A program made the position numbers and the translations under genes. Shown one piece after another: positions 41,601 through 49,600 of a stretch of DNA of 64,000 nt; positions within the stretch are counted from its first letter, which is position 1; each line of letters opens with the position of its first letter. Source of the stretch: Bugula neritina (Eukaryota > Animalia > Bryozoa); the NCBI GenBank assembly GCA_964035545.1, contig OZ037766.1, forward strand, positions 28,627,673 through 28,691,672, in the 5' to 3' direction. The notes beneath the pieces were generated by a model. That model made no database searches and was not told the origin of the DNA. It saw nothing but the letters and a program-made list of their open reading frames with translations.

Positions 41601-42335
41601 AAAAGAGATAATAACTCCTACAAATTCTACGAACAATGCGAAGTAATTTTGATCACTAACCTTCATTATTAATTTCTACTTTTAGTTATATGACAACTCC
41701 AAAAGATTTTGTGAATAAGTTCAACAAATCAATATTGAGTCTAAAATGACTTTTATGGCACAAATTCACCATCTAATAATAAATTATTCATCAGACAATA
41801 ATTTGTGCTAACAAAAGACATTGTTTTTAATTCAAATTACTCATTGAAAGTAGTCACATCTTGCAATGTGATTTTTTCAGGTTCATTTTTGTTAAACAAT
41901 TTCTATGACCTCAAAATCCCATCTCTGAGCCAAGACTTATAAATGCAAAACTAGAAGCTATATCAAAATATACAACTTGCTGATGCAATCCAACAAATAA
42001 TAGCTTTAAGAAAATTACAAGAAATCAGGTAAGGCAATAACATATTATATTATATTGCGTAGATACAGTAACATATTTCCAGACCCGTTCATCTATTGCA
42101 AAATAGATTGGGTAGCATACAAGTTTATAAATATGGCACACAACTATATAGACAACACGCAAAACATAAATTACATAAAGGCGGATAGTTATTAAATTTT
42201 GAAATCGCAAAAAGAAACTTTGAATGTATCAAGTTAAAAAGCTGCCCACATAATTATTATAGAAGGCATGGCAATGAGCCAAGACCAAGTGTAAATCAAG
42301 ACTGGAGTGATGTTTGAGCAAGAATACGGAGTCCA

Positions 42336-44619
42336 CTATTCCAGTTTACTGACTTCTTCAAAATAAGCGGCAGCCACTTTCATCTAAAAGTATAAACAGT
42401 CAATGAGCAGGCAATTGGTAATCAGAATGGCAAAAAACTGAGTATAACAATTTATAGCATCCGTACTTGGTGCATTTTTGCAAAAATTTACAGCATGGGG
42501 ACAAAAGTGTAGACAACTCTTAATAATGCTAAGAATTGTGAGTCCATAAGAAGGCAACTCCAACACAAATTTAACTGTAAGTTGAAGTTTCAGAAAGAAT
42601 GAAATAAGCTTTTTTCAATGATTTTGTTCAGTTATTGGTTTATTTTGGCATATGATGTCATTACCACAGAAAAGACAACTACCAACTTCAAAATTGCTCT
42701 ATTAAGTCAGGGACAATTAGGGATTAGAGAGCTACAATAAGCTGATTGGTCTCATGTTGTCACACATGAAGAGTTTCTTGCCCAATTTCTAACTTACTCA
42801 TAAAAGTGTTTTACACGTTATATAGTAACAGAAAACTTTCAGAGCTTTTAGGACTGCACAAGTTAAACTAATGAAAAGTAAAAGAAGCCAACAGTGCTGT
42901 GCGTTGAGAGAGAGTAACTCCCATTTCTATATTAAACTATTCTATAGGGGGAGAAGTAATCAACTCAATACCAAGAGCGGACAACTCACTCCATTCATGT
43001 AGTTGGCGATATCAAACTTCTCGTTCTGTGAATGTGCTCCGTCATCACACAGTCCAAATGGAAGTAGCAGGGTGTTCTTGCCTGTAGCCTCCTGCAGAGT
43101 GAGGGTGACTGGGATAGAGCCCCCTTCTCTGGTCATGTCGGGCTCAATACCATGGACTATACAAAATCAAGATTAGTAGAATGCAGGCAGCGGGTGAAAT
43201 GAGAGCATATAGACTTCGATATCAGACAAATCAAGAATGAATTGAAAGGAGCTGGCTAATGAGAAGAGTAAAGTCACAACACGCACACATCTGATTCATG
43301 GGTTATCAACAGAGTAGAAGGAATACAGAAACACAAATACCAGCAGAACAAGTAGCATTTCTAAGCTTTAGAAACATGTACAATTTCAAAGAACTGAATA
43401 TAAAAAAAACTTTGATTGTCATGCCACACTGATAGCGTTGAGATCCTGAGCTATAAATTTGAATGAATTTTGGATCTGCTTAAATATTCTTAGAACTTAC
43501 ATTCTACCTACCTACACGTACACCTACCTAAACTTACGTCTGTCTACACCTACATCTGTCTACTGTACATGTATACCTGTCTACACGTACATCTACTTAC
43601 ACATACATTTACCTACACATACATCTACTGTACACATACACCTAACTACACATACATCTGCCCCACACTAGCTCCATTCAATCACAACATGTCCCACTCA
43701 ACAACCTCAAACTGCCTCCAGCTAGTGACAGGATGGAAGACAAAGCTAAGAGAAGCAAAGGGCAGCGGTGAGGAGATTGCATTTACCTGTGACGACAGCG
43801 CGTTTAGCCGCCTCGTAATGAGGGTGATCAAATGCGCTAAGCCAGTGATTGCCGGCACCACCAGAGTAAAGACCACAACTAAAACAGAGAGAGAAGTTGC
43901 TGTATTCACTCACCGGTCTGCGTGGCTCGGCTCGCTGCCATGTAGTGTGGCGAATCAAACGGGCTGACCCAGTGACGCCCGCCGTGATGCATGAAACACC
44001 TAAACAGTAACAGAATCACTCAACTTGATTTAAATCTTCTAAATTGAGAATTGAAACAGAAAAACATTCAATTTGTACCAACTTATTGCCTAAATCACAT
44101 TTATGCATTTCAACAGAAATTATCTTCTAAAGAGAAAACAAATTAGAGCCGGCAAATCTCGCCAGAAGCAAACTCTATCACACATAAGTATCACACAAGT
44201 CAATTCATGGCAGTCACAACATTGAGAAGGTTACGAGAACCTATCAAAGGAAACTATAATCCAAGACTTTTCTTTCCTGTCTACTAACTCCGCCCACTTC
44301 CTGTGTGGACAGCAACACTCACTTCATGTCGTTAGGTGACCCCCTCACAGCCCACACGTTCTGCAAATGCTTCACCACCAGTTCTTCCACCTTCTCGGGG
44401 CTCATGTCCGGCACAATTCTGATGGAGAATTTACCGGAAACCTTGGCAGGAATCACAGTCTTGGCTCCGGGCTCGTAGAATGCCCCCTCAATGCCTACAA
44501 TATTGGATAATAAGACTACACACAAAAACACAACTTCTCTAATTACAAACAATAAATTAGCACAGTGCTTTGAGATCAGAATAAACTTTATATACTGAAA
44601 GGAACCACACTTCAGTATG

Positions 44620-44664
<45 letters not shown>

Positions 44665-47600
44665 CCAGTGCAATGCTCTTAGACTAATTTGGTAGTTTGG
44701 GGTTTGTTTAACCTGCTATTGGGTGTGTAGCCCATCAGCGCAGCAGTTGGATAGCCAGGTGGTGGGGTGCACTGTCTAAACTGATAAAACTTTCTCCTCC
44801 CAAGTACTAATATTATACAACAGAAATACAAGTTGTACAAGTGAATAAGTATATAGCTACGCCACCCAGGAGGCAAAAAGTGATTAAATTATAAATTACG
44901 TTTATGTCTTGTTGTTCTATTAAAAATTTTCATAGTTTCACAATTACTGTACAATTTATTGTTTTGTTTTATTTGGCTAGTTATACTACCAGAGGATGTC
45001 TTCTAGGGAACTACTACACGATTCAACTCTAACTCACATGCAGTATATAAACTAAAGTTGTCTTACCGTGCAGGGAAAGGCTGGGAAATCTCCACCTGTG
45101 TTGCAAGATCTTTTCTTTAGTCTGGTGCATCAGCTTGTTTGCTCCAATATCTTTCCGGAAGTCCTCAGGATCAAAGTCTACGTGCAGTAGAACACAATTC
45201 CTCAAACATATGGGAAACCAAAGGAGTTTATAGTTATAGCGAAAAACTAACAATCAAGGTAAGGGACTGCGGGAGGCAGGCCCCCCGCCCGCATCTTACC
45301 AATACTTTCATAGAGCTTAGCCTCAGAAGTGGTCAGCACAGCCACATCATCGTATATTCCAGGTATCTTGAGTTTGCCGTCTTTATCTACCAGCTGGTCC
45401 ATCATATGGACGAGATCCGACATTGCCTCGTGTCTACACAGAGAATTAAAGGGCTGCATACCGGTCTAGATATGAGATACATATATAAAATACTATGAAT
45501 TAAAGGGCTGCATACCGGTCTAGATATGAGATATACATACTTTATACTATGAGCTATAAGACTATGTTAAACACTCTAGTCACTTACACACTTCCACCAA
45601 ACAGCCCTGAATGAAGATCTTTCTTGGCACAAGTTACATCCAGTTGAAAGTAGCAGACGCCCCTGAAATAGTCATATAGCATGGCTACAGAATATACAGT
45701 ACACTGTACAGAGTGGAATAGGGGCGAATATAGTATCTTGCAACTAGAAGATGGGGTTCCGCTAATAAACAGAACTTCGCTAAAGAAACGATGCCACAAT
45801 TCACAAACAATTACTTGAGAGTTTTTAAATATAAAAAAAACTCAAACAATGATTATTGCGGTATTGCATATGAAGATTATAACTGTGTTAGCTACAATAA
45901 TTCTACGTTTGCTCAAAGTTGAAGATATTGTCAAATCAGTGAGATGAGAATCTCACACGTTTGGAGGATTCTAGAGAAAGAGCAGAGCACATGATGAGAA
46001 ACACAACACGATGAGTGAAGTGTCTTAGATCCATACCTGAGTCCATAAGTCAAGCAGGGCTTATTCTTACCCAGCCAGTAATTGTCAGATATGCACACAA
46101 AATCCACATTCTACAAGCATATATATTACTAATATACAAGCATATATAATACTAATATATAAGCATATATAATACTGATATATAAGCATATATAATACTG
46201 ATATACAAGCATATATAATACTAATATATAAGCATATATAATACTAATATATAAACATATATAATACTAATTTAAAAGCATATATAAAATACAACTAGTA
46301 ATATAGAAAGTGGAGTACTATTATAGCAAGTAGTGACTTACACACTCCACCCCCCCTCTCACACCCCTTCATACACACTACACACCCTCTTACACACTAG
46401 ACCCCCTCTTACATCCCCTAATATACACTACACCCCTCTCACACCCTCTCATACACACCCCCTACTACACTCCTACGTATTACAGAGCCGACCTGCATAA
46501 AGGGTTTGTCCTTCCAGGCAAACACCGTCTCATCCAGACCCTCCGAGCCAGACTCCTCCATCCCTTCGAATATGAACTTCAGATTGACTGGCAGGTCAAG
46601 ACCCAACTTCTGGTGAGCCTCTACACAGTTTAGCCAAGCAAGGCATGGGCCCTACAATACACGGCCCGCATATTAGACAGTATACAGTGCGTGGTACACA
46701 GTCTACAGGACTAATGCATTCCACTCTTTCTTCACTAGAATCTACAGCAACATAACCTTGCCACTTGTGTATCATTGTTCAGTGAAATACTATAATTGTG
46801 TTACACTGGTTTATACAACAATGCAATATTAACTACGGGAGTTGTTCACTCCCTTACAGCCAACTACATTATATATTATTGAGATGCATATTCTGTATAC
46901 ATGCAGTCTCAGTGCTTGCTAAACAGATAGATGAAGGATTCTGGGAAAAAGTGATATGAAGTTGATTGTATGACTGAACTTTGAAGACAGAGTATTATTG
47001 TATTATCTGTATAACATCACATGACTGAACTTTGACCTTATAACAAAACCTAGAAAGATAGTGTTGTCTTGTTGATGGATAATATACAGCTCTGTGATAT
47101 ACTATCTTATCTCACATTTTTATCTGAAGCAAGGTCAAAGGTTACAGACAAACAACATGTCAACTTGAAGATGTGAAGTTTAACCATTCAGCACTGTTTG
47201 TCACAGTTACAAGGAAAGCATTTGCATGAGATGTCACTTCCTGGTACCAGCAACGACTATAGAATTGACCAATGGACCTGTTGTGCACATGTCAACTGCT
47301 CTTTATTGCGCCACAGCTGGTGCAAAACCTCATATATTTTATGGCTTTGGTTAAAAATTAAACTAAACATACCTTTTGAAAGCCGGTGAACTCCAACATT
47401 GTTTAAAGTCTAAACAGTTATGAAATTTGATAGAATTTCTACGAATAACAATAAACACTATATTCCCAAATACAATAATCTAGACAGAGTTATAATTTAG
47501 GAGTTCTGTATCAAAAAGCTCCCACCCACCCAACCACCCCTCTACCCTATCCCCCCCTCTACCCTACCCCCCTCTACCCTACACCCCCCAAACCCCAAGC

Positions 47601-49600
47601 CTTTACCTTATCGTCTGTAGATCCTCTGCCATACAGCTTCCCATCTACTTCCGTCAGTACGAAGGGCTCCGTATCCCACCCGTCAGACTTCAAGGCTGGT
47701 TGAACATCAAGATGGCCGTATATGAGGATGGTCTTTTTAGACTTGTCATGTCCCAGCTCAGCAAAGCATATCGGGGGAATGTCCAGCTGGGTTCCGTCTG
47801 GGAGAGTTTGCTTTCCTGGCTCAACCAGCTCGTACGTACCACCAAGTCTCTTTATCCACTGTACAACACCAAATACTTGTATATATACTATATTTACTAT
47901 ATATACTATACTTACTATATATACTATACTTACTATATACTATATTTACTATATATACTATACTTACTATATATACTATACTTACTATATACTATACTTA
48001 CTATATATACTATACTTACTATATACTAGACTTACTATATATTTATTATATACAACTATATAGTAATTATATACTACTATATAGTCATTGAAGAAAAGCA
48101 TTGAACAATCAAGTGCCACCAGCAAAACTTATACTAACTACTATAACAGAGTAACGGCAAAGTACTCAACCAGGAAGTACTGAAGTGTCATAACTTACGG
48201 TGGTTCTTCAGTCATGTGTATGTATAAAAACAAAAAGCTATAAAATTTCTCTGCAGAAAAATTTTAAGTTAGAAATTCCCCTTCAAATTTGAAACAACTT
48301 GAGTTTAAGATAAATATTGCCAACTATTTTCTAGAAAGCAAAATATTATTGCTTAGCAGAATACAATAATAATCTTTTCAAAGAGGACATTCCTATCCTA
48401 ATTTAGAATAATCCTATTATAACGGTAGCTATTTGATTTTGAATACCCGCAGGTGTGACTGAACAAAGAACAACTTAAGCTAGCTTGAAATTTCACTGCC
48501 ACCCATAGGTCTGACATTGTATTGCTTCCTACTTTAGATTTATACCTCTTGGCTTAGTGTGTGGGTTAACAATGGTAAGAATGCTAGAATTTCACACAAC
48601 TCAAGTTTTAATAGGTTTTTTGGTCCTTATGACTCATCATAATCTTGAAAGATAACATGTAGTAAATATAACAGAAGAAAATGAAAGGGAAATCTATTTT
48701 GGTACATATCATAATGACCATACAATTAGGAGTTTAGTATAGACAAATATTAAGATATTTCATTAGTATTCAATTTATTGCTAGTTTATTATTGCTGCTT
48801 TTTATTATATAATAGAATAGTAAAAACAGCAACTAGCCATATGACCTCACGACTTTTAGAATCACTTGATAAATTCAGTAATATTTATTATTGGATGCCA
48901 TGTGTTCACATATACTCTAACGTTCTCATTCAGATGAATGGCTGGAGTGGACATATAATACATTGCAGTAATATTACAAAAATACATTCATCATTAACAT
49001 TATTACTATACCTATTATTATATTCATGGTATTATTAGGTAACTTTAGTTCCATATCAACTATAAAGAAACTAAAAAAACTAATTCCATTGCCATAATAT
49101 TTCTACTTTAGGTTAACAGGGACAAGTGAGAGTGAGAGCATTAATTTTGGTCCCCTAATTTAGCATAAAGATGTTTATTATAAACAAAAGATACCTCAGC
49201 TACTTCCACCACTTGTTTCTTGATTTCTCCTCTCTTCTCTGGCCATGCCGATACACTCTGTATTGCTACAGATTGTGCAAGTCTTTCTATATACAGAGAT
49301 TGATGCTCATCAATGTACCTATGGCAACAAACCCAACATGCTGATTCAAAATAAATGACTTTATTCACATGTCTACTCTCTATTATTTATTGCCAATTAC
49401 AATAACTCTTTACTGATTGTGTTATTAGAAACTATAGTTGTGAAAAGTTGACGTGAAGCGTATACATACAACTTGCCATCTTATTGAGACCCTGTGGTTT
49501 GCATAGACTTGTTACTTATTTTATTATTGAGGTTATTGAAATTGAGAAATAAATCACAGATAACTTACCCAAAGACTTTGGCAAGATTCTCACTAGCCAT
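42336..49600 (-). CDS. CNDP2: Cytosolic non-specific dipeptidase (M20A, carnosine dipeptidase 2), 477 aa with exon 10a
   Basis: Exons (minus): 49600-49569, 49318-49195, 47858-47607, 46651-46493, 46110-46037, 45662-45588, 45433-45300, 45177-45067, 44494-44323, 43999-43914 (10a), 43156-42990, 42383-42336. Intact motifs [59 protein letters not shown]. No signal peptide, which favours CNDP2 over secreted CNDP1. Confidence 0.95.
43787..43878 (-). CDS. CNDP2: CNDP2 alternative exon 10b (paralogous to 10a)
   Basis: ctgttttag|T...ACAG|gtaaat, 92 nt, same phases (2 then 1) as 10a. Encodes [30 protein letters not shown]. Confidence 0.85.
43914..43999 (-). CDS. CNDP2: CNDP2 alternative exon 10a
   Basis: ctgtttag|G...ACCG|gtgagt, 86 nt. 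Encodes [28 protein letters not shown]. Confidence 0.9.
46113..46290. repeat. 23-bp minisatellite (acaagcatatataatactaatat)n adjoining the CNDP2 exon 5 acceptor
   Basis: About 7 copies; the terminal copy gives tgcttgtag on the minus strand. Confidence 0.9.
47872..48082. repeat. AT-rich repeat of about 18-20 bp (tatatactatacttacta)n
   Basis: About 10 copies next to the CNDP2 exon 3 acceptor. Confidence 0.9.

Follow-up and report, generated by a model that had tools for sequence, protein, structure and literature searches.

A duplicated, putatively mutually exclusive exon pair at the substrate-pocket loop of CNDP2 in Bugula neritina

The CNDP2 locus and its two copies of exon 10

The window analysed in this study, i.e. 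the whole stretch of 64,000 nucleotides, lies on chromosome 2 of the B. neritina assembly tzBugNeri2.1 (PMC11480708). Judged from its sequence, the gene in this window is CNDP2, an M20A dipeptidase. All of the M20A metal and substrate motifs are present, and all are encoded by constitutive exons (equivalents of H99, D132, E166/E167, D195, Y197, H228, T330, R343, S417 and H445). H99, E167 and H445 have their usual M20A roles. Those of the remaining residues were taken from PMC11626516. Exons of the gene match the structures of human and mouse CNDP2. The presence of Y197, HGG and REGGS assigns the gene to the CNDP2 type and not to the CNDP1 type. Homologue searches were made exon by exon, and a search of the genome (216,009,554 bases in 321 sequences) with one conserved exon detected a single CNDP locus; thus, a second CNDP gene is not apparent. 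The features of the gene are as follows:

45067..49318, minus strand: upstream CNDP2 coding exons without the first exon (about 49318-49195, 47875-47607, 46651-46493, 46110-46037, 45662-45588, 45433-45300, 45177-45067)
44323..44494, minus strand: constitutive exon 9, upstream of the pair, with the Thr330 and Arg343 equivalents
43914..43999, minus strand: exon 10a (86 nt), the canonical copy, which keeps His380-Gly-Gly; expressed
43879..43913, minus strand: spacer intron (35 nt), GT..AG, with the last A before the pyrimidine tract 17 nt from the donor
43787..43878, minus strand: exon 10b (92 nt), the alternative copy, lacking the His and two amino acids longer; conserved, with no transcript seen in four contig sets
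42990..43156, minus strand: constitutive exon 11, downstream of the pair, encoding the REGGS loop (Gly416/Ser417 equivalents) and the GAHSQ metal ligand
42336..42383, minus strand: last coding exon, up to the stop codon

A preliminary description of this DNA had reported exons 10a and 10b as a homologous pair with good splice sites and open frames, and our analysis confirmed that the pair is real. Each exon is bounded by an AG acceptor and a GT donor, is in phase 2/1 and contains no stop, so that the two show the hallmarks of homologous exons (adjoining copies, equal phases, canonical splice sites and open frames). Both match residues ~376-403 of human and mouse CNDP2 (E values of 8e-5 for 10a and 1.5e-4 for 10b). 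When aligned with each other they give a BLOSUM62 score of 83, compared with at most 37 for unrelated stretches of 30 aa from the 64 kb, and 52 of 86 nucleotides are identical. As had also been proposed, the inclusion of both exons or of neither shifts the frame and places a stop codon 146 or 157 nt upstream of the last junction, while retention of the 35-nt spacer introduces a stop at once.

Conservation of both copies in other lineages

The search with exon 9 identified relatives at 82-86% identity, which represent two further lineages, both probably bryozoan: (i) lineage B (L004-L008 and L012-L013) and (ii) lineage C (L009, a metagenome contig). The BRYA16-labelled contigs of lineage B were taken, by their label only, as derived from a study of plastic debris in which encrusting bryozoans dominate (PMC5069773). 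The order 9-10a-10b is common to lineages B and C, with open frames and GT-AG ends. Exon 10a is 86 nt long in both, and 10b is 89 or 92 nt; the length of the spacer varies from 35 nt in B. neritina to 44 nt in L009 and 64-71 nt in L004-L008.

The decay of 10b in relatives, considered in the preliminary description, was checked by exon search and dN, and 10b was found to be intact and constrained in both of the other lineages. Synonymous sites between lineages are saturated (pS 0.66-1.08), as is the divergence between 10a and 10b. The dN values between lineages are 0.13-0.15 for 10b versus 0.24-0.39 for 10a, i.e. 10b is the more constrained copy, and its amino acid sequence in B. neritina is 80% identical to that in L009. 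Comparison of the flanking introns between lineages revealed no similarity above that of shuffled sequences. In a small tree (29 columns, no starred branch) the three 10b copies form one clade (93/95), and all six 10a/10b copies are placed apart from the outgroups (91/95). The saturated synonymous sites, the low dN and the 10b clade fit a single duplication of old date, after which both copies were under selection as protein. By these sequence measures, both are under purifying selection across species.

Among the other sequences, L016 contains one exon 10, and its exon 11 is identical to that of the oyster at 54 of 56 positions; L010, L014/L015 and L017 end short of exon 10. A protein search centred on 10b yielded no candidate, a result made uninformative by length limits.

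Transcripts and splicing of the pair

The B. neritina RNA contigs examined (four sets from four studies) contain 9-10a-11-12 as the only form. Of the junctions predicted earlier, those of 10a (44323-43999 and 43914-43156) were observed, but the contigs contained none leading to 10b or away from it. The 10a-10b joint and the double skip were likewise missing from all four sets, which is a weak test, as contigs drop minor variants. Depth over 10b is zero in three of the four sets; in the remaining one (X1), an unspliced contig spans 10b, with no indel within the exon. Alternative exons of similar length form a bubble that assemblers collapse. Thus, 10a is the major form, and since rare variants are dropped and such bubbles collapsed, a 10b form may have escaped the contigs.

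Unspliced contigs of X1 extend across the introns around the 10a/10b cluster (43284-44327, depth 31-56), with none over the last intron, which may mean that the cluster is spliced slowly or that these contigs stem from DNA. Public RNA runs assigned to the same organism are ~3-5% divergent from the assembly in exons (42300-44600), and X1 is 6-10% divergent in introns; such divergence would fit cryptic species of B. neritina.

It has been proposed that joining of two exons is sterically blocked when the branch point lies within ~50 nt of the upstream donor (PMC7969005). In B. neritina, 17 nt separate the 10a donor from the last adenine ahead of the pyrimidine tract, so no branch point can lie farther away than this, and the suggestion that short spacing bars joint splicing is upheld for this species. 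The corresponding distance is 20 nt in lineage C, and the branch-point candidates of lineage B are at most 44-50 nt from the donor. The other CNDP2 introns are at least 120 nt long, and the shortest myosin introns measure ~90 nt by a hand estimate. We infer steric exclusion with the frameshift as a back-up; in lineage B, where the spacer measures 64-71 nt, frameshift and NMD may account for part of the exclusion. A search for a conserved intronic element or a complementary pair found none above shuffles, and docking/selector pairing is thus not indicated.

An upstream AG in the lineage B spacer was also considered as an acceptor and was ruled out, since it is out of frame. In L005 (1455-1474) this extra out-of-frame AG stands at 45 nt, and the 20 nt after it resemble the beginning of B. 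neritina 10b; a duplication of the junction may have shifted the acceptor.

The substrate-pocket loop and the interpretation of the pair

All 10a copies encode the motif x-M-x-H-G-G-R-H-W. In all 10b copies the His is missing, the GG-x-G loop is one to two residues longer, and Asn or Asp replaces Arg. The preliminary description had 10b exchange the His for Ser and gain two residues: the loss of His and the longer loop hold, but the Ser is the product of one of two alignments and is not conserved. An alignment anchored at the front places His380 opposite Ser in B. neritina and opposite Pro or a gap in the relatives, and one anchored at the Trp, as given by HMMER, places it opposite Gly.

The assignment of His380 to the lining of the pocket agrees with the docking of bestatin on human 4RUH, which places the ligand in one pocket formed by His380 and in another at Tyr197/Gly416; the contact with His380 was lost in an MD run (PMC12655758). 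Tyr197 holds the aromatic end of bestatin in S1, with the aliphatic end in S1' (PMC11626516). From this placement of the two ends, the pocket lined by His380 is most likely S1'. Human CN1 has LGL where CNDP2 has HGG. Among the 39 fetched homologues, His380 is present in 24 and absent from 15, with Ser in the fly and Priapulus proteins; the residue is thus not universal, and losing it does not have to entail a large change in specificity.

The insect CNDP2-like proteins P0160, P0170, P0295 and P0313 vary at the His380 loop, with Ser for His or one-residue insertions. P0311 (Priapulus caudatus XP_014677414.1, 104 aa) is a short CNDP2-like model of exons 10-12 only, with Ser at the His380 position, and may represent either a terminal cassette that was duplicated or a fragment of the assembly.

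The explanation that we consider reasonably likely is that an old exon duplication gave rise to mutually exclusive exons 10a and 10b, of which 10b is a minor or restricted form with a reshaped P1' pocket and a shifted dipeptide preference. One tandem duplication, older than the split of the three sampled bryozoan lineages, would have produced two exclusive exons, each encoding the strand-loop-helix that corresponds to human residues ~376-403. With the branch point of 10b no more than ~20 nt from the 10a donor, their joining would be sterically blocked, and the rare products of double inclusion or skipping, which are frameshifted, are likely degraded. Exon 10a, the abundant form in the contigs, would serve as the default, and the constraint on 10b suggests a minor form or one restricted by tissue, stage or condition. 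The 10b isoform would keep the metal and catalytic residues encoded by the constitutive exons and, with the loss of His380 and the longer loop, most likely reshape the C-terminal (P1') side-chain pocket, shifting the dipeptide preference or the partners in reverse proteolysis. In B. neritina and the two related lineages, a single CNDP2 gene would thus probably be able to give rise to two enzymes and, as suggested in the preliminary description, may also give mixed dimers.

A possible, less likely reading is that 10b is a functional, mutually exclusive exon, but that it alters the level of activity, stability, metal preference, dimer closure or contacts between proteins, or yields a subunit of low activity, and leaves specificity as it is. 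This would be consistent with the helix that exon 10 encodes after the loop, with the natural occurrence of CNDP2 proteins lacking the His, and with the instability of the His380-bestatin contact in MD (PMC12655758). However, it is around the His loop that the fixed 10a/10b differences are concentrated, with the helix part (W.S.FD.PHY.AA) alike in both, and the CN1 and CN2 paralogues differ at this very loop. It is very improbable that 10b lacks productive translation and acts as a regulatory or poison element, through double inclusion feeding NMD or through intron retention: the lack of 10b junctions in the four contig sets and the X1 unspliced contigs over introns 9-10, with none over the last intron, would agree with this, but the amino acid constraint at saturated synonymous sites and the frame-compatible lengths (89 and 92 nt) are signs of selection at the protein level. 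A recent or decaying duplicate, to which the absence of 10b from spliced RNA contigs might be ascribed, deserves hardly any credence in view of the intact orthologous 10b in two lineages at saturated synonymous distance and the equally saturated 10a/10b divergence; a recent junk duplication is ruled out by the pS/dN pattern between lineages.

The exchange of a ligand-contacting segment of a metabolic enzyme by homologous alternative exons is known from PKM1/2 and KHK-A/C, which, unlike the present case, are vertebrate genes with known isoform expression. The same applies to the gate-domain exons of ACSL6 (PMC1543647), likewise a vertebrate gene of known isoform expression. The favoured reading of the CNDP2 pair also resembles coq-2 (COQ-2a/COQ-2e), where mutually exclusive exons, one of them lineage-restricted, give one enzyme gene two substrate choices; that enzyme, however, is a prenyltransferase, and its function and regulation were demonstrated by experiment, whereas in CNDP2 they are inferred (PMC7434440). 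OGDH exons 4a/4b (PMC7969005) and alpha-tropomyosin exons 2/3 are exclusive pairs with a branch point less than ~50 nt from the upstream donor and constrained spacer length, but there a distant branch point lies in a longer intron, whereas the whole CNDP2 spacer is 35-44 nt (64-71 nt in lineage B). Vertebrate CNDP1 and CNDP2 (M20A; PDB 3DLJ versus 4RUH) differ at the same loop (LGL versus HGG) and by RDG versus REG; in contrast to the bryozoan forms, which differ in one segment of 28-30 aa, they are products of a whole-gene duplication, with ~54% identity over their full length. The known CNDP2 isoforms (fly A/C and human CPGL-B; PMC6421639) are truncations, not exon swaps. In the literature searched, whose coverage excludes most subscription papers, no description of CNDP2 with mutually exclusive exons or of H380 was found, in line with the preliminary description, so that the pair appears to be an instance, not found described for CNDP2, of mutually exclusive exons retuning an active site.

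CNDP2 degrades dipeptides such as Cys-Gly and also synthesizes N-lactoyl- and BHB-amino acids, and its P1' determinants have been little tested. A natural isoform pair that differs in one segment of ~30 residues and has long been held by selection offers a ready-made test of the loop, and suggests that the dipeptide metabolism of bryozoans includes a hidden branch that is regulated.

A different arrangement (9-10'-11'-10-11-12) was detected in L018 (6829-10168) and L019 (6872-10183), two haplotype contigs from one sample of a distant animal, whose exons 8-9 are closer to Nematostella. The extra 10'-11' cassette is intact (253 nt), and both cassettes together shift the frame. It differs from the canonical copy by pS 0.78-0.89 and pN 0.20-0.24, and between haplotypes by synonymous differences only; HSG replaces HGG, and RDGCS replaces REGGS, with RDG as in CN1. 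These features make it a probable independent alternative cassette, and its different architecture suggests an origin separate from that of bryozoan 10a/10b, which hints at convergence on the same pocket. We would only tentatively propose that the CNDP2 pocket exons are a recurrent target of duplication (exon 10 in bryozoans, exons 10+11 in L018/L019 and the whole gene in vertebrates), with splicing supplying a second, CN1-like or conjugate-making specificity in lineages with a single CNDP gene.

In lineage B, a match to gamma-glutamyltranspeptidase (PF01019) is located ~2 kb downstream of CNDP2 (L004:4729-4872; L005:4864-5007; L008:4499-4642); both enzymes act in glutathione breakdown.
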